A stretch of DNA of 64,000 nt from Mobula birostris (lineage: Eukaryota): NCBI RefSeq assembly GCF_030028105.1, contig NC_092383.1, positions 86,075,921-86,139,920 of the forward strand. The letters are read 5' to 3'. Positions 759 through 41,154 of this stretch are shown piece after piece; within the stretch, counting starts at the first letter, position 1, and each line of letters opens with the position of its first letter. A program made the position numbers and the translations under genes. The notes under the pieces were generated by a model. It saw only the letters and a program-made list of their open reading frames with translations. It had not been told where the DNA came from and searched no databases.

Positions 759-809
759 TCACTTTACCTCCTGGACCACCATGCTGTGAGGATCAGATTC
801 TTCACGTCT
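759..809 (-). CDS. Short cytoplasmic-tail exon RREESDPHSMVVQE(VK*)
   Basis: gccttttccag| acceptor, phase 0, in frame with the TM exon. Ends either at GAG|gtaaag or by read-through GTA AAG TGA. Conserved in copy B. Confidence 0.6.
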   Translation of the reverse strand, partial: RREESDPHSMVVQEVK

Positions 810-875
810 CTGGAAAAGGCAATGATCAATCCATGAGATTTTTCGACAATGGGATCTCTGCTCTATTTCACTCAC

Positions 876-888
876 TACGAAATTCCGT
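876..888 (-). CDS. Candidate 13-nt micro-exon (TEFR)
   Basis: tgcttgtttcag| acceptor and |gtgagt donor conserved at 41221-41233. The downstream intron would be only 66 nt. Confidence 0.35.
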
Positions 889-1008
889 CTGAAACAAGCA
901 TTCCATACATTGACATCAAGCATTCTACACACAAGAGAGCATGTCAAAGCTGAGTTATATCATGAGCAGTATATTTGAAAGTGATTCCACTGATGTCCAT
1001 AAGCCTAC

Positions 1009-1099
1009 CTTAGTTACTCTTGTGAACCACATGACTGAACTGGTGCTGATCATCAGGAGAGCGAAGAGCAGCCAACGGCCCACCTGCCATATCATGAAA
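1009..1099 (-). CDS. Transmembrane exon with intramembrane Arg: (S)FMIWQVGRWLLFALLMISTSSVMWFTRVTK
   Basis: tcttcccctttgctcag| acceptor and AAG|gtaggc donor, hydrophobic helix, conserved in copy B. Confidence 0.8.
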
Positions 1100-1616
1100 C
1101 TGAGCAAAGGGGAAGAGATATAGAATCAGTACGAGGAAATGGGGCAGCGTTGTGTTTTAATCATTTGCCTCCTGATTCTGCTGTAATCTCAGTGGAGTAG
1201 AGTGAGGTAAAGCAGCTGAGCCGGGGGAGTTCAAACTGGAGACTAAACGTGTGTTCAACTGAGAGAGAGAAAATAACCTCTGATCGTCAGTTGCAGACTG
1301 AATTACTGGGACATGAATGCTGGGAAAATGAGGTCTGTGAATCAGAAATTGCAAAGTAAAAATAAATTTTGTGAAGGAAGAGAAAGAAATGGTGAAGTGC
1401 AGAGGTGCGACGATGATAAAGAAATATAATTGAAGGAAGTGGACACTGCCGTAAGGAAGACAGTGATAGAGTGCACATGGATAGATGTGAAAGATAATAA
1501 ATGACGCGTGACTGATGGTGAAAGGGAGAAGGGACGTGAAATAATGCAGACAAATTAGAATGATTAATATGGGGTTGTGGGGTGGAAATACATCTCTACC
1601 AGAGGTGTAAGGCCTG

Positions 1617-4100
1617 AAGACAAAGGAGCATTCATCTATCGAGTCTGCTCTGCCATTTCATCACGGCTGATCCCGGATTCCACTCAGCTCCATACACCTG
1701 CCTTCTTGCCATATTCTTTGATGTCCTGAGCAATCAGCAAACGATCCACTTCGGCCTTAAATATATACACAGACTTGGCCTTCACCACAATCTGTGGTTC
1801 AGCATTCTACAGATTTACTACTCTCTGGCTAAAAATTTCCTCCTTACCTCCGTTCTAAAGAGTCAGAGCTCAATTTTGAGGCTGTGCCCTCTAGTTCTGA
1901 ATACCCCCACCATAGAAAACAGCCTCTCCACATTACCCCTATCTAGTCCCTTCTGCATCTGGTAGGTTTGATGAAATCCCCACATATTCTTCTGAATTCC
2001 ATTTAGTACAGTCCCAAAGCTGCCAGAGGCTCCTCATATGTTATGTCCTTCATCCCAGGAATCATCCTCGTGAACCTTCTCTGGATTTTCTCCAAAGACA
2101 ACATATTCTTTCTGAGATATGGGACCCAAAACTGTAGAGAATATTCAAGTCCAAGTGCAGTGTGATTAGTGTCTTATAAAGACTCAACATTATCTCTTTG
2201 CTTTTATATTCTCTTCCCCTTGAAAGAAATAACAAAATTGCATTTGCCTTCTTTACCACAGTTTCAGCCTGTAAATTAACCTTCTGAGAGTCTTACACGA
2301 GGTCTCCTAAGTCCCTCTGCAACTATGATGTTTGAAATTTCTCCCCAGTTAGGTAACGGTGTGCACTATTGTTCCTTTTAAAAAAAGGCATTATCATACT
2401 TTTCCCAACACGGTAATCCATCTGCCACATTTTGTCCATTCTTCCAATTTGGACTAAGTCCTGCTGCAATTGCTTTGCTTCCTCAGCAGTAACTACCACT
2501 GCACCTATCTTTCTGCCATCCACAAACTTTTCCATAAAGCCATCAACTCCATTATCTAAATCATTGACAAACAATGTGAAAAATTGTAGTTCAATACTGA
2601 CCCCTGAGGAACACCTCTAGTCACTGGTAGCCAACCAGAAAAAGCCCCTCTTATTCTCACTTGCTGCCTCTTGCCGGTCAGCCATACCGCTATCCATGCC
2701 GGTAACTTTATTGTAACCCCATAGGATTTTACCTTGTTAAGCAGTCTCATGTGTGGCACCTCATCAAATGCCATTGAAAGTCCAAGTAAATGACATCCAG
2801 TCCCGCTCCTTTGTCGGTCCTGCTTGTTACTTCCTCTAAGAACTGTAATAGATTTGCCAGGCAAGATTTCCCTTCAGAGAAACCATGCTGTCTTTGACTT
2901 ATTTTATCATTAGACTCTAAGTACCTTGAAATCTTGTCCTTAATAATAGACTCCAACACTTTCCCAACCACCAAGTTTAGGCTAACTGACCTATGATTTC
3001 CTTTCTTTTGCATTCCTCTTTTCTTAAAGAATGGAGTGACAGTTGCAATCTTACATTCCTCTGGGACCATGCCAGAATCAAGTTATTCTTGAACGATCAT
3101 GACCAATGAATCTATTATCTCTTCAGAAACCTCTCTCAGGACTCTGGGATGTAGTCCATCTATTCAAGGTGTCTTATCCATGTTAAGACTTTTGACTTTG
3201 CCTAGCACTTTTTTCCTTTCTAATAGCAATGGCACTCACTCCTGCTCCCTGACACTCACGGACCTCTGGCACACTGCTAGTATCTTCCACAGTGAAGACA
3301 GATGCAAAGTACCTATTAAGTTCATTTGCCATTTCTTTGCCCCCCCCCCCCCCATTATTAGCTCAACAGCATAATTTTTCAGTGGTCGAATATCATCTCT
3401 CTCCTCCCTTTTACTCTTTATATAACTGAAAAAACCTTTGACATCCTGCTTTATATTATTGACTAGTCTGCCCTCATATTTCATCTTTTCACTTCTTATA
3501 GCTTCCTTAGTTGCCTCATTTTGGATTTTAAAAGCTCCCCGATCATCCAGCTACCCACTCACCTTTGCTACCTTATATGCTCCTTCTTTGGCTTTAATGC
3601 AGCCCTTAACTTCCTTTGTCAGCCACAGTTGCCTACGGCTGCCATTTGTAAACTTCTTCCTTTGTGGGACATATCTATACTGTGCCTTGTGAACTGTTCC
3701 CGGAAAATTCAGCCGTCTCTGCTCTGCTGTTATCCCTTCCGGTATCTCCTTCGATCCACCTGCACAAGCTCTTCTCTCATGCCTCTGTAATTCACTTTGC
3801 GATACTGATACATATGAGTCATGCTTCTTCTTCTCAAATTGCAGTGTGAATTCAATCATACAGTCGACCTTCACTAATCCCACTACCTGTATCCGGTTCC
3901 TTCGATAATCTGGCACTGATAATGCTTAACGTGATGATTTTGTAATTTGGCATTTTCACTAATCTGGCACTCCTTAGGTCCCAATGGTGCATGATTAGTG
4001 AAGGTCGACCTGTATTATGATCACTGCCTCCTAAGGCTTCCTTTACATTAAACTCCCTAATAAGATCTGAGTTATTATACAACACCCAATCTAAGGTGCT
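1617..4100 (-). mobile_element. Decayed CR1 LINE (RT and 3' end); orthologous copy at about 42221-45425
   Basis: Fragments QRQHGFSEGKSCLANL, GVPQGSVL and FVNDLD with multiple stops and frameshifts. Confidence 0.9.
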
Positions 4101-4129
4101 CCTTCCTTCTGCTAGTCTGTTGACCACCC

Positions 4130-4415
4130 TTGGGCAAGGTGTAGCATTTGCTTAGCTCTACAGATGAGGGTGCATGAAGCCATTGGACAGGTGCTGGATG
4201 GTCATATGAGCAGCTGGCTATGCGACCAATGATGCCGGGCAGACAATCTCTGAAGTGTCTTGATAATGGCTGGGATAACCTGTCTTATAAAGACACTGCT
4301 CATAAGGGGTCAATGGTAAACAACTTCTGTGGAAAAATTTGCCAAAAACAATCATAGTCTTGGAAAGACCATAATCATCCAAGTCATACAACACGCCACA
4401 AAACAAATGAATGAA
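4130..4415 (+). repeat. Unclassified interspersed repeat (SINE or LINE-tail like); orthologue at about 45460-45740
   Basis: Discrete block ending in (atga)n; family not identified. Confidence 0.35.
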
Positions 4416-4856
4416 TATGGAACTGAGAAAGATAATCATTGGTGATCAGGAAAACAATCTCATTATTCCTGGACTGGTGTTTATGTGGGGATGGAGGAAT
4501 TAGGTTCAACAGATTTCATAACAAATCCAAAAGCCAATAGAGAATTTGCAAATTGAAACAACTGCAGGATCAATCAACCAGAGCATGCATAAAAGCAAAA
4601 AGATGTTCAAACAATAAAATGTATATTATCGTGATTTAAAAAATGATGTAGGCATAAAACAAATTAATGCATTAGAAAAAAACAAATATTGAGTGGCTCT
4701 GCATAGAGATTTGGAAGATAAAGTGTGCAAGAAGAAGGGAGAAGACTCAGAATGCTTGGTCTCAGAGAACATTCAGCATAATATCAGCAAGGGCCAAACA
4801 TAGAACTAGCAATAAGAACATTGTACCATTAAGCAAAACTGAATCAAGTGATTTAC

Positions 4857-4893
4857 CTTACAGATGACACTGTTGTAAATGAATATTCACGTC
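4857..4893 (-). CDS. 37-nt stalk exon: (R/G)REYSFTTVSSV(S)
   Basis: ttccttgcctcaacag| acceptor and AAG|gtaaat donor. Phase 1 to 2 bridges the Ig exons to the phase-2 TM exon. Identical at 46709-46745. Confidence 0.7.
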
Positions 4894-6563
4894 CTGTTGA
4901 GGCAAGGAATGAAAATTCAGTCTCATGTGGATGTGTTTTCCAAATGTTGTCAAGCAGGAGTGCATGACGTCATATTTGGTAGATAAATGTCATTAACATC
5001 AGAGAGTTATACAACAGGATCACGTTTCTGTTCTCAATGACAAAGCAACTCTGGTTTACTACAAAATGCTGGAGGAGCTGGTCAGATCTGGCAGTATCTA
5101 CAGAAATGTATAAACAGTTGACATTTCTGATGAGGGTCTTAACCTGAAACATCAACTGTTGATTTCATTCATAGATGCTGCCTGACCTGCAAATTTCCTC
5201 CACAATTTTATATATGTTGCTCTTGCCGTCCAGCATCTGCAGAATCTCTTCTGTTTCTGTTCTAATATTGGTCAGACAAACGTCATTGAACATCGAAGAG
5301 TTATACCATAAGGGAACAGGCCCTTCAGCTCAACTCATTCACACTGACCAGCCTGAGCTCGTCGTTCCACCTGGTTGGATTAGTCCCATTTCCCTTTTCT
5401 TTATATGTGCTGGTATAGAAATCTTCTATTCATTTTTACTGTACCCATGGCTACCACTTCCTCTAGCAGCTCACTCCATATACCCACTGCCCTCTGTGTG
5501 AAAAACATGCCCCTAAGCTCTTGTTACATCCTTCCCCTCTCTTCCTCAAACTTTAGACAGAACCACTATAGAAAATAATACTGTCAACATTCACATTATC
5601 AATTCCCCTCATGAATTTTCATAATAAAGAATCAAAGTACATTCTTCGACTTGGAACACAGTTATTTGGAAATGCATCATACAGTTTCGAGTCCCACCTC
5701 TCTTGAGTTTTTGGTTTGTAAAGTAACCACTACATTGCCAATGACATAAAAATGTCTGGGTTGATGATGATATCAGGGCTCCTCAACTGTATATAGATAG
5801 ATGAATGTGGAGCCAAAACATGGAGAATGGGACAGTATGAGGTTATGTACCTCAATGTAAGGAACCTAAAAATAGACTGTTATCTACAGTACAGTATTAT
5901 AAACAAAACTGTAAATGAGTGAAAAAAGGCATCCAAGTGTCTTCTGAACAAATAGAAAAAAGTTCTTGCATGAGATTTGGAAGAAAAGCAAATAGTGCAC
6001 AGTCTTTTATTGTAAGAGGTTTGGAATTTTGATAGAATGAATTCTTGTTGCATTGCAGGCAGTGTTGTTGAGACCATGCCTGGAGTACTCTGTGTAATTT
6101 TATTCATTCAGTTTAAGGAAGGATATACTGATTGGAGGAAGTTCATAACAGATTTTTTGGGATGACACCTGACTATTGGACCCACAGCTCCAACCTGCTG
6201 ATTAAATTTGCCGACAACATTACACTGATTGGACTTACCTCAAATAATAACAAGACAGCCTACTGAGAAGAGTCATCACTCTGACAGAGTGGTGTCAAGA
6301 AGCAAACCTCTCCTTCAATGTCGTAAAAACAAAGAAGCTGGTTGTGGACTGCAGGAGAAACGGAGACAGTCTCACGTCTATTGACATCAATTGATCTGGG
6401 GCTGAGAGGGTAAACAGCTTTAAGTTCCTCAGTATACACATCACCAAGGACCAGCTCTATGGTGAAAAATGCACAACAGGACCTCTTTCCATAGAAACCA
6501 TAGAAACTACAGCACAGAAACAGGCCTTTTGGCCCTTCTTGGCTGTGCCAAACCATGTTCTGC

Positions 6564-9490
6564 CTAGTCCCACTGACCTGTACACGGACCATATCCCTCC
6601 ATACACCTCCCATCCATGTATCTGTCCAATTTATTCATAAATGCTAAAAAAGAACCCGCATTTACCACCTCGTCTGGCAACTCATTCCATACTCCCACCA
6701 CTCTCTGTGTGAAGAAGCCCCCCCTAATGTTCTCTTTAAACTTTTCCCCCCTCACCCTTAACCCATGTCCTCTGGTTTTTTTCTCCCCTTGCCTCAGTGG
6801 AAAAAGCCTGCTTGCATTCACTCTATCTATACCCATCGTAATTTTATATACCTCTGTCAAATCTCCCCTCATTCTTCTACGCTCCAGGGAATAAAGTCCT
6901 AACCTATTCAACCTTTCTCTGTAACTGAGTTTCTCAAGTCCCGGCAACATTCTGGTAAACCTTCTCTGCACTCTTTCAACCTTATTTATATCCTTCCTGT
7001 AATTTGGTGACCAAAACTGAACACAATACTCCAGATTCGGCCTCACCAATGCCTTATACAACCTCATCATAACATTTCAGCTCTTATACTCGATACTTCG
7101 ATTAATAAAGGTCAATGTACCAAAAGGTTTCTTTACGACCCTTTCTACCTGTGACGCCACTTTTAGGGAATTTTGTATCTGTATTCCCAGATCCCTCTGT
7201 TCCACTGCACTCCTCAGTGCCTTACCATTAACCCTGTATGTTCTACCTTGGTTTGTCCTTCCAATGTGCAATACCTCACACTTGTCTGCATTAAACTCCA
7301 TCTGCCATTTTTCAGCCCATTTTTCCAGCTGGTCCAAGTCCCCCTGCAGGCTCTGGAAACCTTCCTCGCTGTCTACTACACCTCCAATCTTTGTATCATC
7401 AGCAAATTCGCTGATCCAATTTACCACATTATCATCCAGATCATTGATATAGATGACAAATAACAATGGACCCAGCACTGATCGCTGTGGCACACCACTA
7501 GTCACAGGCCTCCACACAGAGAAGCAATTCCCTGCTACCACTCTTTGGCTTTTCCATTGAGCCAATGTCTGATCCAATTTACCACCTCTCCATGTATACC
7601 TAACGACTGAATTTTCCTAACTAACCTCCCATGCGGGACCTTGTCAAAGGCCTTACTGAAGTCCATGTAGACAATATCCACTGCCTTCCCTTCATCCACT
7701 TTCCTGGTAACCTCATCGAAAAACTCCAATAGATTGGTCAAACATGACCTACCACGCACAAACCAATGTTGACTCTCCCTAATAAGTCCCTGTCTATCCA
7801 AATGCTTGTAGATTCTGTCTCTTAGTACTCCCTCCAATAACTTACCTACTACCGACGTTAAACTCACCGGCCTATAATTTCCTGGATTACTTTTCGATCC
7901 TTTTTTAAACAACTTAACAACATGAGCCACTCTCCAATCCTCCGGCACCTCACCTGTAGACAGGGACATTTTAAATATTTCTGCCAGGGCCCCTGCAATT
8001 TCAACACTAGTCTCCTTCAAGGTCCGAGGGAACACCCTGTCAGGTCCCGGGGATTTATCCACTTTAATTTTCCTCAAGACAGCAAGGACCTCCTCCTTTT
8101 CGATCTGTACAGTTTCCATGATCTCACTACTTGTTTCCCCTAATTCCATAGACTTCATGCCAGTTCCCTTAGTAAATACAGACGCAAAAAACCTATTTAA
8201 GATCTCCCCCATTTCCTTTGGTTCCGCACATAGTCGACCACTCTGATCTTCAAGAGGACCAATTTTATCCCTTACAATCCTTTTGCTCTTAATGTACCTG
8301 TAAAAGCTCTTTGGATTATCCTTCCCTTTGACTGCCAAGGCAACCTCATGTCTTCTTTTAGCCCTCCTGATTTCTTTCGTAAGTATTTTCTTGCACTTCT
8401 TATACTCCTCAAGCACCTTATTTACTCCCTGCTTCCTATACATGTCATACAACTCCCTCTTCTTCTTTAACAGAGTTGCAATATCCCTTGAGAACCAAGG
8501 TTCCTTATTCCGATTTACTTTGCCTTTAATCCTGACAGGAACATACAAATTCTGCATTCTCAAAATTTCTCCTTTGAAGGCTTCCCACCTACCGATCACA
8601 TCCTTGCCAGAGAACAACCTGTCACAATCCACGCTTTTTAGATCCTATCTCATTTCTTCAAATTTGGCCTTCTTCCAGTTAAGAACCTCAACCCTAGGAC
8701 CAGATCTATCCTTGACCATGATCAAGTTGAAACTAATGGTGTTATGATCACTGCAACCAAAGTGCTCCCCTACACAGACTTCCGTTACTTGTCCTAACTC
8801 GTTTCCTAACAGGAGATCCAATATTGCATCCCCTCTAGTTGGTCCCTCTATATATTGATTTAGAAAACTTTCCTGAACACATTTTACAAACTCTAAACCA
8901 TCTAGACCCCTAACAGTATGGGAGTCCCAATCAATATATGGAAAATTAAAATCCCCTACCACCACAACCTTACGTTTCCTGCAGTTGCCTGCTATCTCCC
9001 TGCAGATTTACTCTTCCAATTCTCGTTGACTATTGGGTGGTCTGTAATACAATCCCACTAATGTGGCCATACCTTTTCCGTTTCTCAGCTCCACCCATAA
9101 GGACTCAGTAGACAAGCCCTCTAATCTGTCCTGCCTGAGCACTGCTGTAATATTTTCCCTAACAAGCAATGCCACTCCCCCACCTTTCATTCCTCTGCCT
9201 CGATCACATCTGAAACATCGGAACCCTGGAATATTAAGCTGCCAGTCCTGCCCCTCCTGTAGCCAAGTTCCACTAATTGCTGTAACATCATAATTCCACG
9301 TGTCAATCCACGCCTTCAACTCATCCGCCTTCCCCGCAATACTCCTAGCATTGAAATATATACACCTCAGAGGATTTTTACCACCACTCACAACCTTTCT
9401 ATTAGTGAATTTGCATGAACTTTTAACATCGTTTATTTTCACCCCAGCCACACTGTCAGCTCTGGCACTCTGGTTCCCATCCCCCTGCAA
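6564..9490 (-). pseudogene. CR1 ORF2 (APE-RT), disrupted
   Basis: Consecutive ORFs 9008-9490, 8645-8965, 7535-8632, 7077-7577 and 6564-7070. Confidence 0.9.
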
Positions 9491-9492
9491 AT

Positions 9493-10453
9493 CTAGTTTA
9501 AAGCCTCCCCAATAGCACTAATAAACCTCCCTGAAAGGATATTGATCCCCCTGTAGTTCAAGTGTAACCCGTCTCTCTTGTACAGGTCCCACCTGCCCCA
9601 GAAGAGGTCCCAATTATCCTGAAATCTGAAACCCTGCCCCCTACACCAGTTCCTCAGCCACTTGTTCATCCTCCAGAGCATCCTATTCCTACCCTCACTG
9701 GCACGTAGCACAGGTAGCGATCCTGAGATTACCACCCTCGAGGTCCTGCTTTTCAACTTCCTCCCAAGCTCTCTATACTCACTCTCCAAGACCTCCTCAC
9801 TCTTCCTTGCTATGTCATTGGTACCGATGTGCACCACGACATCTGGCTGATCACCCTCCCACTTCAGAATGTCATGCAATCGATCAGAGACATCCTTGAC
9901 CCTGGCACCCCACCCGGGAGGCAACAAACCATCCTGGATTCTCTGTCACAACCACAGAACCTCCCATCTGCACCTCTAACTATTGAGTCCCCTATCACTA
10001 CCGCTCTCCTCTTTCCCCCCCCCCCCTGCACTGCAGAGCCAGACTCAGTGCCAGAGATCCAGCTAGTGCAGCTTGTCCCAGCTCATCCCCCCCAACGATA
10101 TCCAATGCGGTATACTTGTTGTTGAGGGGAATGGCCACAGGGGAACCCTGCTCTGCCTGCCCTTTCCCCTTCCCTCGCCTGACAGTGACCCAATTTCCTG
10201 TCCTCTGCTCCTTTGACGTAACTACCTCCCTGTAGCTACGATCTATGATCTCCTCATTCTCCCGAATGATCCGCAGGTCATCCAGCTCCTGCTCCAGTTC
10301 CCTGACGCGGTTTGTCAGGAGCTGCAGCTGGATGCACTTCTTGCAGGTGTCGTTGTCAGGGACACCGGAGGGCTCCCTGACTTCCCACATCCTGCAAGAT
10401 GAGCATTCCAACATCCTGCCTGGCATTCTCTCTACACTAGACAACCTAAACAA
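9493..10453 (-). pseudogene. CR1 ORF1 (zinc finger plus esterase), frameshifted
   Basis: Split into ORFs 9998-10453 and 9493-9927. Confidence 0.85.
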
Positions 10454-11454
10454 AAAAACTTACCGGAACCTACCCTGGCCTCTGCCTGTTGAGCCAAAGC
10501 CGTCCCACTCTGACTCAGTCTACTCCAACGATGGCCGCTGTATATAGTGGTCTGCTTTTAAATCTTGGCACGCTACGTCACGTGCCTGGGCAGTGCAGAT
10601 CCTTCTCCCCGAGCAGTGTTAAAAAAAATGACTATTTCTACCCCAGTTCTTCCACTCCCTTCTTCAGCTGCTTGCTTCGACTGAAACAAGAACCGTTGAA
10701 ATTTTCTCTTTTTAAACCTTGGTGCGCTACGTCACGTGCCTGCACAGTGCAGACCCCTCTCCCCGAGCAGTGTTAAAAAGAAAGCGACTTTTTCTACCCG
10801 ATTTCTACCACTCCCTTCTTCAGCTACTTGCTTCAACTGAAAACGGTTGAAGAAGTTTGGCATAAGTCCCTAAATCCTAATGACTTTCTACAGGGGCACA
10901 ACTGAGAGCATCCTGACTGGCCGCATCACTGCTATGGATGCAAACTGTACTTCACTCAATTGCATAGTTTGGTGCAGACTGTCCAGCACATCTGTGGATG
11001 GGAACTCCCCACTATTCAGGACATTTACAGCGACAGGTGTGGACCCAAAGGATCTTTGGGGACCCAAGTCAACCCAATTACAAACTGTTCCACCTGCTAC
11101 CATCCAAGAAACGGTACCACCGCATTAAAACCAGGACCAACAGTCTCTGGGACAGCTCCTTCCACCAGGCCATTAGACTGATGAATTCACACTGATACGA
11201 TTGTATTTCTATGCTATATTGACTGTCCTGGTGCACATACTATTTGCTACAAATTACTATAAATTGCACATTGCAGACTCAGACGGAGATGCAACATAAA
11301 GGTGTTTACTCCTCATTTGTGTGAAGGATAAGGAACAGAGTCAATTCAATTGATTTTGGAGACTAAAGCTGACAAGGCCTTTTGTAGCTTCATAAAACTT
11401 TGGATAGATCACAACGAGAACAATAATATGTAGTTCTGTTTGCAACCCCGTAGA

Positions 11455-14849: not shown

Positions 14850-15559
14850 TGTACGGTGTTTCTTCTTTTATGTTACTGCATAGGCTAATTAAAATGGCTT
14901 CTTTGTTATGTTATAATTGAAATGGCTTCTTTGTTATGTTAACTACTGAGAAAGTCCTCCCGCTAGCAGTTTGTTTGGATTATGTTACTAATAACAGGAT
15001 GAACAAACCAATTGGGATAGATGTTATTCTTTCTGTGTGTCTGTAAGTTATTGTGATGTGCGGGTTTTTGGAGAGAAGGCACAAGAGAGAGAGAGGGAGG
15101 ATGGACCAGGTGCTGTGAGTTGGCTAATGGGGTTGCACCCTGATCAGGAGCCCGAGGTGCAGGGTGTTCGGCGAGGAGAGGAGACAGAGACGTGTGGAGC
15201 GTCTGGTCGACCACCGTTGTTGGTCCCAGGCAGCAGGTCGAGGTGGTCCAAGGGGATCACAGGGTGAAGAAGGAGGGTCCTGAGCTCCAACTGTTTGTGC
15301 ATGAAGAGATCGAACTTTGATAAGTGTGGCGCCTTTTATTTTCCTTTTATATTTTATTCTCTATTAATTATATTGTTCCAGTAATATCTATAAACTGTAA
15401 TTCATTTAATCGTATCTGGTGTATTGTCTGTTATCTGGGCAGGGTGAGGTACCTCACACAGCATCCACACAAACTAATTACCCAGTTTGGTGGGGCTGAG
15501 GGCTGTTTCCCTAGACGACAGCGAGCCGAGCGACCCTGAGGGTGGCCAGGGGAGCTACA
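14850..15559. mobile_element. Solo LTR (710 bp)
   Basis: TG...CA termini and 4-bp TSD ttta. The empty site is at about 29955. Confidence 0.85.
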
Positions 15560-15573
15560 TTTAATTGTCTTAC

Positions 15574-15610
15574 CAAACAAAATATAGAGAATTAACAACA
15601 GATGCTACAT
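15574..15610 (-). pseudogene. Leader-like relic exon M*HLLLILYILF(G)
   Basis: 37 nt with a TTG|gtaaga donor, same length and phase as the 33172 leader. Codon 2 is TAG. Paralogue at 29969-30005 begins GTG TAG. Confidence 0.4.
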
Positions 15611-16149
15611 ATTAACCTACTGCTCTGGTCTCTTCCTGCATTGCCCCATCACTTCTCGGAAAACTTCTCAACAACCATGGGTCAATATACTTATGAGAAC
15701 AAATGCAGAGACACAAAACGTTTTCAGCAAAGCATTTCTGTTTCAGCAACTAGATCACTGAATAACAATAACAATTTGGTGAAGCAAAGTGAAAAGGCCA
15801 CTTAACCGTTGTGTTTAAACCTGTTCCCAATCCTGTGCATACTAGTCGATACAACGGTGGGATTGTAAAACGTTCTCTGTTCTGTTGTTGAGAAATCATA
15901 CAGAAATTGCAGCTTTATGAGGTATTGGTCAAACTGCATGTGGAATATGGTGAACAGTTCGAGGCATATATCTTTGAATGGATGTGCTGCAATTGGAGAG
16001 GGTCTAGTGAAGGCAGGGAAGTGGTGATGACTTCTCGATAAAATCTATAAGTTTGATTAGACATGTACTACCACCCACGAAGCCATGCTGACTATTCTTA
16101 ATCCGCCCATGTCTATCCAAATATGATAGATCTATCTGGTCACTTAGAA

Positions 16150-17155
16150 CAGCGGTCCCCAACCACCGGGCCACAAAGCATGTGCTACAGGGCCGCGAGG
16201 AAACGATATGATTTGGCGATATGAGTCAGCTGCACCTTTCCTCATTCTCGTCACGCCCACTGTTGAGCTTGAATGCACACGAGGTCATTACCCGCGCGTC
16301 ACCCATGTCAGCGCGGGAAGAAGGTCAACTCCTGAAGCTTGCAAATGACGACGGGCTGAAAAGTATGTTTGACATAACATCTCTGCCGGTGTTCTGGATC
16401 AAAGTCAAAGCTGAATATCCTGAGATAGCCACGAAAGCACTGAAAACGTTGCTTCCATTTCCAACATATCTCTGCAATGAATGCAACGAAAACTACATTG
16501 CAGAATAGACTGGACATAAGGAACCCCCTTCGAGTATCGCTGTCTCCCATCACCCTTCGATAGGACCATCTTGTTGCAGGAAAACAAGCCCAGGGCTCCC
16601 ACTGATTCAGCGATATTGGTGTGTTGCAATGATTTTATATGTTCATACGAGGAAAATATGTGCTGTGTATTTAATATCCAAACGTCACTTAAAATGTTAT
16701 GATGCTATTGACTTATAAGTGACTTATACAGTAACTGACTTATCACTATTTTTATGCGAGGAAAATATGCGCTGTGTGTTTAGTATTAAATTTATTAGGT
16801 AAACCCTTTTATAAACAAAATTGAGTGTATTAGCCACTAAAAGGTGACCTATAGTTGACTGATCTTCTATATTCCGGTTGTGATTAACACCCCACCTCCC
16901 CAACAGAATCGCCAAAAACGATTTGTAGAAAAAAAATCGGCACGTACATGCATGCGCAAGTCGCACATGCACACAGAGTTGCCCGCGCAAAGCTTCTTGG
17001 TAATTGTAGTCGTCTGGGGTAAACACAATGTATTTGACTTTTACTCTTGTCCATTGGCAACCTTACCCACCCCCTGCACTCCCCAGTCGGCCGGTCCGCA
17101 AGAATATTGTCAATAATAAACTGGTCCGCGATGCAAAAAAGGTTGGGGATCCCTG
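16150..17155 (+). mobile_element. Internally deleted hAT (Charlie/Buster-like) DNA transposon
   Basis: TIRs cagcggtccccaacc / ggttggggatccctg, 8-bp TSD acttagaa, and hAT C-terminal fragment FWIKVKAEYPEIATKALKTLLPFPTYLC. Empty site in copy B near 49425. Confidence 0.92.
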
Positions 17156-17692
17156 ACTTAGAATACATTCCAATAACTTTTCTGCAACTGATGTGAGATT
17201 CACTTCTCTACAATTTCCTAATTTATGCTTAGACCCTTTTTTAAACAGCAGATCAGTATTGGCTACTCTCCGATCCTCTGGTACCTCTCCGGTTGCTAAG
17301 AATAGTTTCAGTATGTCTGTCAGGGCCCAGGTATTTTCTGCACTTGTCTCCCGTCAGATCTGAGGGAACACCTTAGCAGGCCCAGGTGATATTTCCACAC
17401 TGATATGCCTCAGGATAGGAAACACCTCCTCCTCTGATACGTAACATTTCATGGAGTTCAGAGGCAGGAAAACTTGCTGAGCTTTCCGCTGGAAATTGGT
17501 GTCCCATCAGTGGGTCAGAACCTGCACTGGGTGAGAGCAACATGAGCGGGGTTTCTTTACCATTGTTCACTCGCCACAGGGCTCTGCACTGCTGTGGAGC
17601 CTCCGGATATTCCTGCTGCCCTGACTCTTCCCAGAGAAAATATGAATCAGACATTTCATTGGAGACATCAAGTCAATCAAAAAGAAACCTAC

Positions 17693-18007
17693 CGTCAGAT
17701 ACTTGTAGATGCACATCACACACTGGATGATTGCCAGATGTTGTAATTCCCCATCTGTAATGTCCTGTATCATTAGAGACAAGATTCTCCATAGTAACAG
17801 TAAATATTCCCTGGGATGTGTTATCTCTGATTGCCATTCTTCCATACTGCTCATTTGTCCCATTTGTATTCACTAACGGTGTGCATTGGTGACCCCACAT
17901 GCGGCACAAATACTTTGTGTGTGAACGGTACATTGGTGCATAGTGACAATCGATTGTGATCGCTCTTCCCACAACTCCTCTTACTTTATCTTCTGCCCAT
18001 AAAGCAC
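17693..18007 (-). CDS. Ig V-set exon V2, copy A; F-strand Cys replaced by Trp (DTGHYRWG)
   Basis: Same splice sites and length (315 nt, phase 1-1) as V1 with an open frame. The canonical second Cys codon reads TGG. Confidence 0.8.
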
Positions 18008-18280
18008 CTGAAACTGAGGGAGAAGTTTCTCAGAAAACGCACAGGTAAAATCAAATCAACACAGGGAGATTCAAGATTCTAGATCGTTTCATGTCATTTC
18101 TTGTACAAAGGTGTAAAGGAGAACAAAATCATTATCACACTGGAACTGACACAAAAGATAAGAAATGCAATCATTATAATAAAGATATTTAATTTATAAA
18201 TGTCACTGTGTCCTAAGGAATCTGCCACACTGTCAATTGGTGTAATTGAATTCGACATTGACTGAAAAGACAACCGCATC

Positions 18281-18436
18281 AAAAACACAATATAATCTGC
18301 ATATGCTGGGATCAAAGCAACACTTACAACACGCTGGAGGAACTCAGCAGGTCAGGAAGCATCCGTGGAAATGATGAGTTGACTTTTCAGGCCGGAACCC
18401 TTCGTCAGGACTGAAGAGGGAAGGGGCAGAGGCCCT
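18281..18436 (-). mobile_element. Short Penelope-derived repeat with a hammerhead-like core, specific to copy A
   Basis: Reverse strand reads ctgacga agggttccggcct gaaaagtc. Flanked by gcatc duplication; absent near 50520. Confidence 0.65.
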
Positions 18437-19959
18437 AGCATCGTCCCTCATCTCGTGCTCACACCTCTTCACAAGTAATGAATCTTATTTGTTGGAGTCA
18501 TCATTATCATTGCCCACTACTGTCTCAGTATGTTTCCACATTTCAGAGTCAATAGATTACTGATCCAGTCCCATTCCAGGTAGGTGAGCATAAGATCAGT
18601 GGGGGTTAACTTTCTGTAGGCAATTGTGTGAGACAGGATCTCCCTGAATTTGCAAATGCAAGATGTGATTTGGGATAGTCAACATAATATTGTGCATAGG
18701 AAATCCTCTCCCAAAAATATTTGAGTTTTTTTTGAGAGATGATCATAGGAACTGATGACGACAGGACTTTAGTGTTTAGCTGTTTTGTTTAGCAGGGCTT
18801 ATGACCGTACCTTGCATAGCAGACTGATCTGTAATGTGAGATCACATGGTAAGCTACCTGGATGGATATTGAATAGTCTTGGTGGAAGGAGTCAGACTGT
18901 GGTCGTGGAGTGTTGGTTTTCTGACAACATCAGACTTTATCACCAGTGGTGTGCCATCAGGATCGGTGCTGTTATTTGTTAACCACTCTTATTTGTCATC
19001 AATATTAATAATTTGGAATGAAAATGTAGGTGGAATGATTAATAAGTTATGGGTGACACTGCAGTGTGGTGGACAGTGGAAAGAGTTGTGTAAGTTTGCA
19101 TGAGGATCTTGAAAATGAGCCGGTGTTCAGCCCCATTGCTCAGTGCCAGCAAGCTGTCCCCACCTGAGCCTGTATGGTCTGCTTGCATTTGACCTGTCTC
19201 CCTCTCCTCTCGGTACTACCATCAGGTGGAAGGTGCAGGAGTCTTGGGGCTCACACCACGGGGTTTGTAAACAGTTGTCCTGCAGCTATCAGGCTCCCGG
19301 ATTGGTTTCACTCGCCTCAGCACTGAACTGACTCCGCAGCTGTGGACTCACTTTCAGAGACTCTGCCTCTCATGTTCTATGTATTATTTGTTTACGTATT
19401 TTTATTATTTGCATGATTCATCATCTTTTGCACATTGGCTTTTTGTCAGTCTTTGTTGTGTGTGATTTGACATGGATTATATTGTGTTAGTTTGTTTTGT
19501 GGACAAAGGTATGGTGGATAATCACAGTCTTTATCCCAGGATGGGGAAGTCGAAAACGAGAGACCCTTGGCTTAAAGAGTGAAGGGAAATTCTTAGAGAG
19601 CCTGGAGAGGCAGTGTTTTACACAGAGCAGTGTGTGTGTGGAAAAGGCAGTCAGAGGAAGTGCTAGAGATGGTTACAAATACACTATTTAATATACATTT
19701 GGACAAGTTCATATGTAGGAAAGTTCTAGAAGGATACCAGCCAAATGCAGGGAAATGGGAGAAGCTCAGGAAGACACTGTGGTCAGCATGGACGATTTGG
19801 GGTGAAGCTCCTGTTTCCATAACCTATAACTCTCTGACTCTGCAGCATCCTCCCTAAACTGGAACAACAGGAATTCTGCAGATGCCGGAAATTCAAGCAA
19901 CACACATAAAAGTTGCTGGTGAACGCAGCAGGCCAGGCAGCATCTCTAGGAAGAAGTGC

Positions 19960-19995
19960 AGTCGACGTTTCAGGCCGAGACCCTTCGTCAGGACT
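19960..19995 (-). ncRNA. Minimal hammerhead motif in the inverted pLTR
   Basis: agtc-CTGACGA-agggtctcggcct-GAAACGTC-gact with a 4-bp stem I. Confidence 0.7.
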
Positions 19996-21929
19996 AACTG
20001 AAGGAAGAGTGAGTAAGGGATTTGAAAGTTGGAGGGGGAGGGGGAGATCCAAAATGATAGGAGAAGACAGGAGGGGGAGGGATAGAGCCAAGAGCTTCCA
20101 AAATGATAGGAGAAGACAGGAGGGTTCCTGCCCCACTGAACTCGTTTCTGCATACCTCGACACGGTTTTATTCCCCGTTGTTCAATCCCTTCCTACCTAT
20201 GTTCGTGACACTTCTCATGCTCTTGAACTTTTCGATGATTTTAAGTTCCCTGGCCCCCACCGCTTTATTTTCACCATGGATGTCCAGTCCCTATATACTT
20301 CCATCCCCCATCAGGAAGGTCTCAAAGCTCTACGCTTCTTTTTGAATTCCAGACCTAATCAGTTCCCCTCTACCACCACTCTGCTCCGTCTAGCGGAATT
20401 AGTCCTTACTCTTAATAATTTCTCCTTTGGCTTCTCCCACTTCCTCCAAACTAAAGGTGTAGCTATGGGCACCCGTATGGGTCCTAGCTATGCCTGCCTT
20501 TTTGTTGGCTTTGTGGAACAATCTATGTTCTGTGCCTATTCTGGTATCTGTCCCCCACGTTTCCTTCGCTACATCGACGACTGCATTGGCGCTGCTACCT
20601 GCACGCATGCAGAGCTCGTTGACTTTATTAACTTTGCCTCCAACTTTCACCCTGCGCTCAAGTTTACCTGGTCCATTTCCGACACCTCCCTCCCCTTTCT
20701 AGATCTTTCTGTCTCTGTCTCTGGAGACAGCTTATCCGCTGATGTCTACTGTAAACCTACCGACTCTCACAGCTATCTGGACTATTCCTCTTCTCACCCT
20801 GTCTCTTGCAAAAATGCCATCCCCTTCTCGCAATTCCTCCGTCTCTTCCGCATCTGCTCTCAGGATGAGGCTTTTCATTCTAGGACGAGGGAGATGTCTT
20901 CCTTTTTTAAAGAAAGGGGCTTCCCTTCCTCCACTATCAACTCTGCTCTTAAACGCACCCCCCCCCCATTTCACGTACATCTGCTCTCACTCCATCCTCC
21001 CGCCACCCCACTAGGAATAGGGTTCCTCTGGTCCTCACCTACCACCCCACCAGCCTCCGGGTCCAACATATTATTCTCCGTAACTTCCGCCACCTCCAAC
21101 GGGATCCCACCACTAAGCGCATCTTTCCCTCCACCCCGACTGCATTCCGCAGGGATCGCTCCCTACGCGACTCCCTTGTCCATTCGTCCCCCACATCCCT
21201 CCCCACTGTGCTCCCTCCTGGCACTTATCCGTGTAAGCGGACCAAGTGCTACACATGCCATTACACTTCCTCCCTTACCACCATTCAGGGCCCCAAACAG
21301 TCCTTCCAGGTGAGGCAACACTTCACCTGTGAGTCGGCTGGGGTGATATACCACGTCCGGTGCTCCCGATGTGGCCTTTTATATATTGGCGAGACCCGAT
21401 GCGGACTGGGAGACCGCTTTGCTGAACACCTACGCTCTGTTCGCCAGAGAAAGCAGGATCTCCCAGTGGCCACACATTTTAATTCCACATCCCATTCCCA
21501 TTCTGACATGTCTATCCACGGCCTCCTCTACTGTAAAGATGAAGCCACACTCAGGTTGGAGGAACAACACCTTATATTCCGTCTGGGTAGCCTCCAACCT
21601 GATGGCATGAACATTGACTTCTCTAACTTCCGCTAATGCCCCACCTCCCCCTCGTACCCCATCTGTTACTTATTTTTATACACACATTCTTTCTCTCACT
21701 CTCCTTTTTCTCCCTCTGTCCCTCTGAATATACCCCTTGCCCATCCTCTGGGCCCCCCCCCTTGTCTTTCTTCCTGGACCTCCTGTCCCATGATTCTCTC
21801 GTATCCCCTTTTGCCTATCACCTGTCCAGCTCTTGGCTCTATCCCTCCCCCTCCTGTCTTCTCCTATCATTTTGGATCTCCCCCTCCCCCTCCAACTTTC
21901 AAATCCGTTACTCACTCTTCCTGCAGTTT

Positions 21930-21963
21930 GTCCTGACGAAGGGTCTCGGCCTGAAACGTCGAC
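21930..21963 (+). ncRNA. Minimal type-I hammerhead ribozyme motif in the Penelope pLTR
   Basis: gtc-CTGACGA-agg(gtctcgg)cct-GAAAC-GTC-gac: core, stem II and stem I (gtc/gac). Confidence 0.7.
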
Positions 21964-23701
21964 TGCACCTCATCCTAGAGATGCTGCCTGGCCTGCTGCG
22001 TTCACCAGCAACTTTTATGTGTGTTGCTCCCTAAACTGGAACACACTTTTGAAAAGTTAAATTCAGAATTCTATTTCATTGCATAGATGTGACAGCTTAT
22101 GGGATCACAGCCTATCAGATTGCACTTCAGTCTCAAAATTCAAAGTTCAAAGTACATTTATTATCAAAGATTTGATACCATATACAACCTTGAGATTCAC
22201 CTCCTTCCAGACAATCATAAAAAAATAGAACACCCAATATACAGAAAAAAGAGCAAATCAAAGTAAGCAAGTAACATTTGGAACTGAAATTCACAAAACT
22301 GAGGCCACAGCCAAGAAGCCAGTCATGACTGTAGCCAATTCATGAGCCCGTTAATTGCCAACCATGGCCTCAGTTCAGCGTAAAGACACGTAAACCTTAC
22401 TGTGCAGCAAGCTGAACACCAGCCCATCCCTCGCCTTGGACTGACATTCCTTTAGTGATTAAAAGGGACTTGAAGGTTTGTTATCCTTGTTGTAATCATG
22501 AAATGCAGCAGCCTTGTTCATAGAAGAAATGGATTTCCTTCTCATGTCTCAAAGTGAGTGAGGTTTTTTATTTAACAAACAAAAACTCAGTTTCAGCAGT
22601 TAGTAGTTTACCTGGGCCGCTCAGATATTCAAAAGCCAGAGATGACCAAAGACAATGAGCCCATAAGAAATAGGAGAATTAGGCCATTTGGCCCATACAG
22701 TCTGCTCCACTATTACATCAAGGCTGATTTATTACCCGACTCAATTCTATTCTCCCCGTAATCTTTGATGCCTTTCCTAAACAAGGAACTATTAAGTACG
22801 CTTTAAATATACCCAATGTCTTGGTCTCAAAAGCCATGTATGGTATTGAATTCCACAGATTCAACACCCTGTGGCTACAGAAATTCCTCCTCATCTTTGT
22901 TCTAATGTACAGAGCCTGCACATCCTCCATGTGGAATGTATGGGGTCTCCCCGTGTGGTCCTGTTTCCTCCCACAGTCCAAAGACATACTCATTAGGAGA
23001 ATTGGTCTTTGCAGATTGCTCTGTGATGAGGTTTACAGTTAATTGGGTTTGTCGAGAGTTCCTTCAGTGTTGTGGCCCAAAGGGCCGGAAGGGCCTACTC
23101 TGTACTCTATCGGTAAATAAATAAAATAAAGGGATGTTCTTGCATTCTGAGGCTGATTTTTCAGGCATGATTTCCCCCATATGGAAACCATACTTGATCA
23201 TATACATCCAAGTACCCCAAAATCCTGTTCTTAGTAATAGACTCCCACATCTTCACAACCACTAAAGTCCTGCTAACTGGTTGACTATTTCCTTTCTTTT
23301 GCCTCCCTCCTTTCTTAAAGAGTGGGGTGATATTTCCAATTTTCTAATCCCTCGAACAATCCAGAGTCTAGTTATTCTTGAAAGGTGACCACTAATGCCT
23401 CCACGATTTCTTTATAGAACTCTTTCAGAAACTTGGGTATAGTCCATCTGTCCAAATGACTCATCTACTTTCAGATCCCTCAGCTTCCCGTTTTGCTTAC
23501 TAATAGCAACGACACTCATCCCTGCCCCTGCCATTGCCAGATTTCTGTTATTCCCTCTAATATTTGCAATATTATAAGTCTTTCCTTTTGCTTTTCTGAG
23601 AGTGTCATTGAATCAGAAGTCGATACCTAGTCTAGACTTTTCAAAGTAAAGCCAGAAATATTAATGGACTGTTCTCAATTTGTCCAGATGTGCAAGTCCA
23701 A

Positions 23702-23829
23702 CTATGTTTGAGATGCCTCACATCTTCCAGGAGCAAGTGACAGACTTAACTGTTCACTGCACTTTATTTCTACCCCATGGAGGCTGCAATGTGCAGCTTC
23801 TACAAATGCAAAGAAATTCCTTACCCTCA
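23702..23829 (-). CDS. Candidate alternative terminal exon after C2 (soluble isoform), 42 aa with 3 Cys
   Basis: 76-nt GT-AG intron, open phase-1 frame MRVRNFF...RCEASQT ending in TAG. The TAG position is shared with copy B, which also has an earlier TAA. Confidence 0.3.
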
Positions 23830-23905
23830 CTAGAAGTATATGACCAGCAGTAACAGAGTAATTAAAAAACATTTAAATGTATCCTCCCTTAAAATTAGAA
23901 CTTAC

Positions 23906-24226
23906 TAGTGCCATTGATTTCTGTCACATAACTGCAGATATCTCTGTTGTTGAAGATTGTCACATTAACCATTGCACTGGATCTTGCTCCAAGCCGATTC
24001 GAGGCACTGCAGTAATATTGATGGTGTGTGTGCTTGAAGGATTGACAATGTAGAGTCAGTTCATTGGTATCTGAGATCTTTGGATACACAGATGAAGTTC
24101 TTTCATACCATCTGTACTGAATGGGAAGGGATCCCTGGAAGGACTCACAGGAAAGTGACACAGAGCCCCCGAGGCATGAGACATTTGCTGGTGACAGATA
24201 TCGAAGCACAGGAACAGACACAAATA
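23906..24226 (-). CDS. Ig C2/I-like exon, copy A, intact
   Basis: ctttcccacag| acceptor and |gtaagt donor, 321 nt, phase 1-1. Motifs VSLSC..YRWY..QYYCSASN; sequons NVS, NVT and NGT. Confidence 0.88.
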
Positions 24227-24276
24227 CTGTGGGAAAGAATTAAACATTCAGTCACTGAATGAACATCTGAAAATCA

Positions 24277-24830
24277 AACACTCTTCTGCCACTTTATTAG
24301 GTACATATATTAACCTGATCATTAATGAAAATATCTAATCAGTCAATCAGACCATCAGCAACTCAGCCCATCAAAGCATGCAGAAATATTCAATAGTTTC
24401 AGTCAGTGTTCTGGACAAACATCAGAATGCGGAAGTCATGTGATCTCAGTGCCTTTGACCATGCAATTATTGCTGGTGCCAGACGGGGTAGTAAATATCT
24501 AAGGCACTACTAACCTCCTGGGATTTTCACACACAACTGTCTCTAGAGTTTACTGAGAATGGTACGAACAACATGAAAAAACATCCAGAGAGCAGCAATT
24601 CTGTGAACAAAAGTGCCTTGTTAATGAGAGAGATCAGAGGAGAATGGCCAGACTGGTTCATGCTGACAGAAAGGTGACAGGAATTCAAATAACCGTGGGT
24701 TATGACAGCGGTGTGCTGAAGAGCATCTGAAGGTACAACACATCAAAGCTCGAAGTGGATGAGCCACAGAAGCAAGAGACCATGAACATACACTCAGTGG
24801 CCACTCTGTTATGTTCAGGAGGTTTAAAGG
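24277..24830 (+). mobile_element. Non-autonomous Tc1/mariner-like element; other copies at about 33985-34410, 38020-38950 and 55215-55275 + 59098-59445
   Basis: cagtggccactttattaggtac-type ends and a degenerate N-terminal HTH (SDFDRG..GARQG.LSISE.ADLL.FS). Confidence 0.7.
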
Positions 24831-25032
24831 CAGCAACTTGTGAGATATCTGTCACATGTTTGGAGGCTTTCAGGAGAGAATGAAATTGTAACTGGGTTCA
24901 GTGACCTGCCGTATGGTGGGAAACATTTGGCACTGATATTAATGCAGAGATAATGAGGGATGGACAGTGTCTGGCAAAGATCATGAGACATTTATTTTAT
25001 GGAATGCACAAATCAATCACTGAGAAACCTAC

Positions 25033-25347
25033 CATCATTTACTTTTAGAAGTAAATTAAATCTTGTATTGAGACCTGGTGTTTCAATTCCACAGCTGTAC
25101 CATCCTGTATCTCCAGAGTGAAGATTCTCAATTGTAACAGTAAATTTTCTCTGTTCCGGGTTATCTGTGATTGACACTCGTCCACTCCGTCCGTGTTGCC
25201 CATTTGTTTCCACTAAAACTGAACAGTGACGAGTCCATCCATGGCACCAATACTTTGTGTGTGAGCGGTACTTTTCTTCATAGAGACAATCGATTGTGAT
25301 CGCTCTTCCCACAACTCCTCTCACATGTTTCTCTGCCCACAATGCAC
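25033..25347 (-). CDS. Ig V-set exon V1 (CD300/pIgR/CMRF35-like), intact
   Basis: tcagtttcag| acceptor and |gtaggt donor, 315 nt, phase 1-1. Motifs TIDC, KYWC-x6-C (second disulfide typical of CD300/pIgR) and DTGWYSC. Confidence 0.92.
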
Positions 25348-25922
25348 CTGAAACTGAGGGAGGCATTTTCAGATTTGAGGGAAAGGAACAACTTAATGCA
25401 AAAATTATTTTTGAACATGACGGTGAAAACAGGTGCAGGTCATGTTCAGCACGTGGACCATGACACCACAGCCAATAATTTTGGTCTGAGGTGCAGTCAG
25501 TGCTGTTACTGTGTCAGCTGTGTCAGTGCTCTCTCCCCTGTGTCAGTACATTGTGGGTTCACTTCCCACTCCACTCTCACCCACCTCCAAACACCATTCC
25601 TTTTCCACCCCATTCAATTTGCCTGTTCCTCATTCCTCAGCCCTGACTAACTTGAGGACCCAGTTTCATGCCTCCCCCTCCCCTATTTACACGCTCTCCC
25701 TCTCCAGTCACACGTGATGCAGGCTCTCGACCCAAACCATTGACATTTCCCCTCCTCCTGATAGATGCTGCTTAACCCATTGAGTTTCTCCAGGAGTGAA
25801 CTCTGAACTCCAGCTTCCGACATCTTTAGTGTCTACAGGTGTTCAAGTATTGTTGTGGAAACGTTGTACAACCCCCAATCCAACACTGATTATGCAGTTG
25901 TCCAGTGCTGTCTGTAACTCAC

Positions 25923-25962
25923 CAGGTAGGAAACCAATCAGAAGAATCAATGTCCACATCAT
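25923..25962 (-). CDS. Signal-peptide (leader) exon of CD300/pIgR-like receptor, copy A: MMWTLILLIGFLP(G)
   Basis: ATG, hydrophobic 13 codons, phase-1 donor CTG|gtgagt. Joins V1 to give ...FLPGALWA. Confidence 0.85.
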
Positions 25963-33171: not shown

Positions 33172-33208
33172 CAGGTAGGAAAGTAATTAGAAGAATCGAA
33201 CTCCACAT
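33172..33208 (-). CDS. Orphan paralogous leader exon MWSSILLITFLP(G)
   Basis: ATG, 12 codons, CTG|gtgagt. Flanking intron and upstream DNA are homologous to 25640-26400, but no V exon follows at the expected distance. Confidence 0.7.
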
Positions 33209-41103: not shown

Positions 41104-41154
41104 TCACTTTACCTCCTCGACCACCGTACTGTGAGGATCAGATTCATCACGTCT
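41104..41154 (-). CDS. Cytoplasmic exon, copy B: RRDESDPHSTVVEE(VK*)
   Basis: Orthologous to 759-809 with conserved splice signals and stop. Confidence 0.6.
   Translation of the reverse strand, partial: RRDESDPHSTVVEEVK

Follow-up and report, generated by a model that had tools for sequence, protein, structure and literature searches.

The MDIRs (modular domain immune-type receptors) found in skate and zebrafish are multigenic receptors with activating and inhibitory members, and are related to CD300, TREM, FCAR and pIgR (PMC3031540, in which the source paper is given as Cannon et al. 2006, Immunogenetics 58:362). The gene considered here lies in a stretch of 64,000 nucleotides from the giant manta ray, Mobula birostris (contig NC_092383.1, positions 86,075,921 to 86,139,920). 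This whole stretch is called the window, positions are given in window numbering, and the gene is on the minus strand. Taken jointly with the explanation of the locus offered below, it is highly probable that positions 759-25962 hold one gene of the chondrichthyan MDIR family, with immunoglobulin (Ig) domains in the order V-C2-V and an arginine in the transmembrane (TM) segment. As reportedly described in 2006, MDIR ectodomains are modular, being assembled from few Ig subfamilies into one to six Ig domains. MDIR5 has four Ig domains (V-C2-V-C2) and MDIR2 has V-C2 followed by a tail of the type that bears an immunoreceptor tyrosine-based inhibitory motif (ITIM), whereas the manta gene encodes V-C2-V. 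It also comes from a different batoid lineage than the skate MDIRs, and its second V domain (V2) is without a canonical cysteine.

Mammalian CD300 molecules, whose activating members are CD300b, CD300c, CD300d and CD300e, have one V domain and no C2. In pIgR there are V-type domains only, again with no C2, and the cytoplasmic tail is long and serves in sorting. FCRL5 lacks V domains altogether; its motifs are ITIMs and others resembling the immunoreceptor tyrosine-based activation motif (ITAM). FcalphaRI and PIR-A/LILRA are receptors with an arginine in the TM segment that use FcR-gamma. The manta gene combines one module each from pIgR (the V domain) and FCRL5 (the C2 domain). Its ectodomain is encoded by two V exons and one C2-type exon, in contrast to the single V of the mammalian CD300 family. 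Unlike the tandem V-only pIgR with its long tail, it has a C2 domain between its V domains and a tail of 16 aa, and it differs from the FCRL proteins (C2/I-type domains only, with an ITAM/ITIM tail) in having two V domains and a tail without tyrosine. Carp SITR is another combination of a V/C2 (I-type) domain with a CD300-like V domain, and was linked to the MDIRs by those who described it; SITR, however, is soluble, has only two domains, whose order is reversed, and belongs to a teleost (PMC3031540).

A preliminary description of the locus had proposed six exons with GT-AG sites, at 25962-25923, 25347-25033, 24226-23906, 4893-4857, 1099-1009 and 809-759. Read on the minus strand, these coordinates were reproduced, and joining the exons by script gave the predicted 855 nt in frame (40+315+321+37+91+51), translated into 284 aa plus stop with no internal stops. 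Every internal exon boundary reads AG|...|GT, and the donors of the six-exon chain are GTGAGT, GTAGGT, GTAAGT, GTAAAT and GTAGGC. A revised model with upstream V acceptors and the V2 exon has seven exons and a coding sequence of 1182 nt (393 aa), with the open frame intact and canonical splice sites throughout:

25923-25962, minus strand: leader exon, coding part of 40 nt (MMWTLILLIGFLP plus 1 nt), donor GTGAGT
25033-25353, minus strand: V1 exon, 321 nt with the upstream acceptor (315 nt when counted from 25347), phase 1-1, V domain of CD300/pIgR type
23906-24226, minus strand: C2 exon, 321 nt, phase 1-1, FcRL5-like C2/Ig_3 domain
17693-18013, minus strand: V2 exon, 321 nt, phase 1-1, second CD300-type V domain
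4857-4893, minus strand: stalk exon, 37 nt, phase 1 to 2, encoding the 12 residues (G/R)REYSFTTVSSV
1009-1099, minus strand: TM exon, 91 nt (IWQVGRWLLFALLMISTSSVMWF), with the arginine in the outer part of the helix
759-809, minus strand: final coding exon, encoding the 16 aa of the cytoplasmic tail (RREESDPHSMVVQEVK), without tyrosine, then the stop; the 3' untranslated region (UTR) continues to lower coordinates

The borders of the V exons are one place where the revised model departs from the first one. An AG located 6 nt upstream of the earlier V1 acceptor moves the start of this exon to 25353, which fits the homologues, every one of which reads 'LPVSGALW' after the leader; among them are skate MDIR2 and MDIR5, whose sequences we take to be derived from cDNA clones. 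Where a homologue has V2 next to C2, the joint in most cases reads G(T/I)ISGALW. Since the homologues read in this way, V acceptors 6 nt upstream of those first proposed are required.

The conceptual product has the general features of a type I membrane protein. Its hydrophobic N-terminal leader is the top score in a Kyte-Doolittle scan and matches the leaders of the Mobula and Hemitrygon homologues. A hydropathy peak at about residues 346-375 corresponds to the TM segment and has the arginine inside it. Both a basic residue within the TM helix and a short tyrosine-free tail are thus present, and there are six N-glycosylation sequons. The stalk is homologous to the stalks 'GREYSFTTVSSA' and 'RREYSFTTVSST' of two protein models from Hemitrygon akajei (P0014 and P0151), and an identical copy of the stalk exon is found at 46745-46709.

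The leader lies 570 nt from V1, while the intron between C2 and V2 measures 5892 nt. That the gene is spread over some 25 kb of DNA rich in transposable elements was correctly described: its introns contain open reading frames (ORFs) of long interspersed nuclear elements (LINEs; reverse transcriptase, endonuclease and GDSL esterase) at about 6.5-9.9 kb, together with further reverse transcriptase fragments at 2.7-3.1 kb. In the intron between V2 and the stalk, the LINE with its GDSL esterase, endonuclease and reverse transcriptase ORFs occupies 6564-9927 on the minus strand. The C2-V2 intron holds a Penelope-like element (reverse transcriptase plus GIY-YIG) at 19913-21636 on the plus strand, where the summed contig depth in the sequencing runs considered below reaches 1e5.

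The identity of the three Ig domains is clear from profile and structure comparisons, which agree with the earlier assignment of a CD300/pIgR-type V domain joined to a C2-like domain. In Pfam, V1 is a V-set domain (9e-13), C2 an Ig_3 domain (3e-7) and V2 a V-set domain (5e-6). Compared with solved structures in the PDB, V1 matches pIgR over several domains, and its best single-domain matches are CD300A (CMRF35-H) and CLM-6 (CD300A/C) at 1e-20, ahead of CD300F, pIgR D1, TIM, NKp44 and TREM2. The V domains match pIgR D1-D5 at 8e-49 over four stretches, and the C2 exon matches the Ig domains of FCRL5 at 5.6e-38 over five stretches. V1 has four cysteines (C..YWC..C..YSC), that is, two disulfide pairs including the second (C-C') pair of the CD300/pIgR/TREM type, and this extra disulfide is its likeness to the V domain of CD300.

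Protein searches place the gene in a family of cartilaginous fish. The C2 exon has 1368 relatives in a library of 1.8 billion proteins. A homologue search with this exon alone gave no match, but it covered only proteins of 58-185 aa, a range that leaves out the full-length relatives and says nothing about their absence. A search with the closest full-length relative returned 107 clusters, nearly all of them chondrichthyan and from 22 species, whose NCBI names are pIgR-like, Fc receptor-like 5 or CMRF35-like. Two relatives from the clearnose skate (Rostroraja/Raja eglanteria) carry the UniRef names "Modular domain immune-type receptor 5" (P0166) and "2" (P0200). Identity to MDIR5 is 66% for V1, 64% for C2, 63% for V2 and 50% for the stalk, TM segment and tail; identity to MDIR2 is 70% for V1 and 63% for C2. 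The likeness to these two skate proteins extends to an identical leader/V start ('LPVSGALW'), to both domain types, which agree at 63-70%, and to the alternation of V and C2. MDIR5 also has the same motif in its stalk and TM segment (..EYSC..; WKVGRWLLF), followed by a tail that is short and acidic. The motif WK/QVGRWLLF is common to skate MDIR5 (WKVGRWLLF) and to the Mobula and Hemitrygon proteins. As in the skate, the family is a large multigene one with activating-type and ITIM-type members.

Closer relatives are found among rays. Identity per Ig domain is 84-92% to models from Mobula birostris, M. hypostoma and H. akajei, among them the pIgR-like Gnomon models of NCBI for M. birostris (P0153, P0152 and P0015) and H. 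akajei (P0014 and P0151). The stalk, TM segment and tail (58 aa) are 84% identical to the C-termini of P0014 and P0151, which are annotated proteins, and P0153 also has an arginine-bearing TM segment. Most of the pIgR-like Gnomon models have an additional C2 domain, for which the window has no counterpart, and the tails of P0152 and P0158 are ITIM-type. A search of the window for a second C2 exon of type b, as present in P0152, P0153 and MDIR5, found none.

The preliminary description regarded a CD300-type V domain next to a C2-like domain as an atypical architecture, and this has to be given up. Judging from the sequences retrieved, the combination of V and C2 is the norm of the family in cartilaginous fish: V-set together with C2/Ig_3 is the rule among the relatives from 22 chondrichthyan species, whose architectures include V-C2, V-C2-V, V-C2-V-C2, C2-V-V and as many as six C2 stretches, and it defines the skate MDIR family described in 2006. 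The family, its modular V plus C2 design and its members with a charged TM segment have been described already, and what is new is one more member gene.

Could the gene instead be the cartilaginous-fish orthologue of mammalian pIgR or CD300? Its V domains do match pIgR and CD300 structures best, and its relatives have been automatically named 'polymeric immunoglobulin receptor-like' and 'CMRF35-like'. However, the FcRL-like C2 between two V domains, the TM arginine and the 16-aa tail do not fit the single V of CD300 or the V-only ectodomain and long tail of pIgR. Matches from outside the chondrichthyans are restricted to the V part, at 33-43% identity, and the gene sits within a lineage-specific cluster of more than 120 V exons. 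Orthology of this kind is therefore extremely improbable, and membership of the MDIR family is the preferred assignment.

Evidence on splicing comes from contigs of four small sequencing runs from one study. That these runs are RNA is a guess, and one of them is flagged as probably DNA. The contigs were aligned to positions 20100-26099; they give no expression levels, and what follows concerns the joints and loose ends that were listed. The joint 24226|25033 is present in contigs of all four runs. It skips 806 nt with CT..AC ends, which are GT..AG on the minus strand, and corresponds to the predicted splice from V1 to C2. C2 itself is matched exactly by contigs in all four runs, spanning 23906/23910 to 24147/24157. 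Of the words sampled from 23850-26050, a share of 0.27-0.31 is present in the runs, which equals the exon fraction of that stretch, and contig depth is about 100-350 in exons and 5-40 in introns. In the bin 25900-26099, which contains the leader, depth is seen in run X1 only. Further downstream, the word share for 560-1099 in the four runs is 0.52, where about 0.55 is expected of a sequence reduced to the TM exon plus tail and 3'UTR and 1.0 of an unspliced one. With the Pfam matches, the 84% identity of the C-terminus and the junction found in four runs, the in-frame chain of exons is far beyond chance.

The step from C2 onwards is where the splice path had to be changed. In a contig from run X1, position 23906 (the C2 donor) is joined to 32 letters that are the reverse complement of the start of the V2 exon (18013). 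This contig includes the TTTCAG of the acceptor 6 nt upstream and then continues in sequence shared by V1 and V2; its V2 part was recovered by its placement on the homologous V1. Within 84 kb around the gene, the 32-mer of the V2 start is found only at 18013 and in one upstream unit. The upstream unit differs in the end of C2 and in the following letters of V2, and hence the contig fits the present gene. Of the path first proposed, the splice from V1 to C2 (25033|24226) was recovered in the contigs, while the direct splice from C2 to 4893 was not, the informative contig joining C2 to V2. The same contig, together with the homologues, supports the upstream V acceptors.

A direct splice from C2 to 4893, with V2 skipped, would make the main product a two-domain V-C2 protein, 284 aa long, or two residues longer (286 aa) if the upstream acceptor is used. 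C2 and V2 are both in phase 1, so skipping keeps the frame; the resulting C2-stalk junction ('GT RREYSF') is present in the H. akajei model P0151; and skipping of a V2 that is without its canonical cysteine might be tolerable. Against this, the only reported contig across the C2 donor continues into V2, the splice sites of V2 are good, and V2 directly follows the first C2 in P0015, P0152, P0153 and P0158. A main product of two domains is consequently quite unlikely. The shorter protein is possible as a minor isoform beside the three-domain receptor, which we take to be the principal product.

The window also contains a second, partial copy of the gene. Self-BLAST showed that positions 1-24680 are duplicated at 40367-59441 with 86-92% DNA identity. 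The features of this copy, called copy A, and of an orphan leader exon are as follows:

40367-59680, minus strand: copy A, corresponding to the 3' two thirds of the gene (self-BLAST, exon BLAST and sequence)
about 59620-59680, minus strand: V1' stump of copy A, reduced to its last ~55 nt
54845-55165, minus strand: C2' of copy A, with the B-strand cysteine changed to phenylalanine
49959-50258, minus strand: V2' of copy A, in frame, with in-frame deletions
46709-46745, minus strand: stalk' of copy A, intact
41354-41444, minus strand: TM' of copy A, intact
41104-41154, minus strand: tail' of copy A, intact, with its own stop
33172-33208, minus strand: orphan leader exon (MWSSILLITFLP plus 1 nt), donor GTGAGT, 77% identical to the leader of the gene by blastn

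Upstream of the orphan leader, a promoter-like stretch reaching to about 33300 resembles that of the gene. No Ig exons were found downstream of this leader at 26-40 kb of the window. A similar orphan leader occurs at window-equivalent 83.9 kb. Within an intron of copy A there is a run of 317 N at 41586-41902. The next upstream unit has its V1'' at 77.7-78.0 kb, C2'' at 76.6-76.9 kb and V2'' at 70.5-70.8 kb (window-equivalent), with no TM exon of its own before copy A. Copy A may thus supply the 3' end to a longer gene which, with the upstream unit, would have five Ig domains, or it may be a relic.

These remains raise the question of whether the exons at 759-25962 belong to separate genes, or whether its 3' exons are used only through read-through from upstream units. 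A window with a second partial copy and an orphan leader is compatible with this idea, and the unit at 70-78 kb, with no TM exon before copy A, makes long multi-unit transcripts conceivable. However, V1 is preceded, 570 nt upstream, by a leader whose donor is good, there is no other TM or tail exon between V2 and 1099, copy A is closed by a separate tail and stop that lie upstream of the leader, and the same order of V-C2-V-stalk-TM is seen in homologous proteins. It is hardly credible, then, that the exons are not those of a single MDIR gene.

In V2 the canonical F-strand cysteine is replaced by tryptophan (YRWG), and a new cysteine stands nine residues downstream in place of a phenylalanine, so that the number of cysteines remains even. 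It is conceivable that V2 has a relocated disulfide between the B-strand cysteine and the new G-strand cysteine (Cys250-Cys326), or that its core is repacked.

Several points weigh against the reading of the locus as a working receptor gene. Firstly, among 30 paralogous V2-type exons, the F-strand position is cysteine in 28, tyrosine in one and tryptophan in one, the last being the present gene only. Secondly, the ratio of non-synonymous to synonymous substitutions (dN/dS) against the nearest copy, calculated from few sites, is 0.86 for V1, 0.70 for C2 and 1.34 for V2, which may point to drift. Thirdly, the joints from V2 to the stalk, from the stalk to TM and from TM to the tail are based on homology and on the word share of 0.52, while the joint from C2 to V2 comes from one contig of one run, for which a copy of at least 95% identity elsewhere in the cluster is a possible source. 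To this is added the guessed RNA status of the runs mentioned above, including the one that is probably DNA. Lastly, among 235 fetched proteins, no annotated protein matches the gene at more than 91%.

These observations could be taken to indicate that the gene is transcribed and spliced but decaying within a birth-and-death cluster, with a misfolding V2 and no selected function. The loss of an otherwise invariant cysteine in V2 (the tyrosine in one other exon aside, the only change to tryptophan among the 30), the dN/dS of 1.3 in this domain, the degeneration of the sister copy A (V1 truncated, C2 cysteine changed to phenylalanine) and the lack of a retrieved annotated protein speak for this. 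Yet the frame is open over seven exons with canonical splice sites, exon depths are like those of the neighbours, and V1, C2 and TM are intact. The even number of cysteines in V2 and the change from phenylalanine to cysteine nine residues after the lost one could be compensatory, and a dN/dS near 1 is also typical of diversifying immune receptors. For the TM exon compared with copy A, dN/dS is 0.25, again from few sites. The dN/dS values and the cysteine loss can be read as diversifying evolution or as decay in its beginnings. On balance decay is unlikely, and an intact MDIR gene remains the favoured reading.

What such a receptor might do can be proposed from its parts. An mRNA of seven exons would be translated into a 393-aa type I membrane glycoprotein composed of a signal peptide, V, C2 and V domains, a 12-residue stalk, an arginine-bearing TM segment and a tyrosine-free tail of 16 residues. 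This would be a leukocyte surface receptor, whose ligand is probably bound by V1, the CD300-type domain farthest from the membrane. The arginine, placed in the outer third of the TM segment, would pair with an aspartate in the TM segment of a dimeric ITAM adaptor that signals in leukocytes, and the receptor would form the activating half of a paired activating/inhibitory system. From general knowledge, a charged TM residue, a short motif-free tail and genomic pairing with ITIM-bearing relatives are the points of likeness to activating CD300 and other receptors with a TM arginine. Such likeness is not orthology with mammalian CD300, and adaptor use by the manta gene is proposed by analogy. The position of the arginine, as in FcalphaRI and PIR-A, points to an adaptor that would be FcR-gamma-like rather than DAP12. 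The manta genome has a TM exon of an FcR-gamma-like adaptor at C18:98440460-98440546, on the same contig as the window (C18) and 12 Mb from the receptor cluster, and one of a CD3-zeta-like adaptor at C7:39292028-39292111 (LCYILDGVLFVYGIIITALYLKLR).

It is tempting to go further and ask about the ligand. To our knowledge, a pIgR orthologue has not been reported from cartilaginous fish. Given this, and because a pIgR-type V module is combined with an FcRL-type C2, the cluster could encode antibody receptors. The batoid MDIR cluster, with the present gene and its TM arginine included, would then constitute the Fc or polymeric-Ig receptors of cartilaginous fish (for IgM, IgW or IgNAR), representing an independent or an ancestral form of antibody sensing. 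We give this suggestion only a slim chance.

The genomic surroundings are those of a large paired-receptor cluster. Genome-wide there are at least 123 V1-like exons, and all but a handful are located on the contig of the window at 85.9-88.1 Mb (a cluster of ~2.2 Mb), partly in repeats of ~105 kb. The same region of C18 holds 28 TM exons with an arginine and about 10 ITIM-type tail exons. Five near-identical V1-type exons, at C18:86202155, 86307834, 86417345, 86520682 and 86624955, recur every 103-110 kb, a period that is shared by several further types of exon, forming a higher-order tandem array inside the cluster. Two long open frames at V2-type exons of the cluster (370 and 252 aa) were considered as intronless retrocopies and rejected, being read-through into intron or transposon sequence.

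The very next gene, 22 kb downstream, is that of P0015, whose leader and V1 are 91% identical to those of the present gene and whose V2 is letter-for-letter that of an exon 44 kb downstream. A further 16 kb beyond this gene lies an ITIM-type tail exon (C18:86032738-86032971), which is the layout of paired receptors. In the NCBI model of P0015, the stalk, TM and tail exons are replaced by a transposon ORF (residues ~385-536, locus C18:86044303-86044617). This false 3' end is a coiled-coil ORF with more than 8000 candidate copies over all chromosomes.

The suspicion that small exons are mis-annotated here has some basis, therefore, in the neighbour, whose model ends in a transposon ORF; for the gene itself, no retrieved protein matches. 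The present MDIR gene appears to have been missed by automatic annotation. How models fail at this locus can be seen here: the exons for the stalk, TM segment and tail are tiny and sit at a distance of 13-17 kb, beyond transposons, and the model of the neighbour runs into a transposon ORF.

The outcome is a hand-checked model of a gene encoding 393 aa, with V-C2-V domains and a TM arginine, and with support from contigs of the putative RNA runs for the succession V1-C2-V2. It opens no new question, since the family, its modular design and its charged-TM members are known. For comparative immunology it adds a single observation, namely that batoids have retained a very large cluster of paired activating and inhibitory MDIRs, in which segmental duplication and decay go on.

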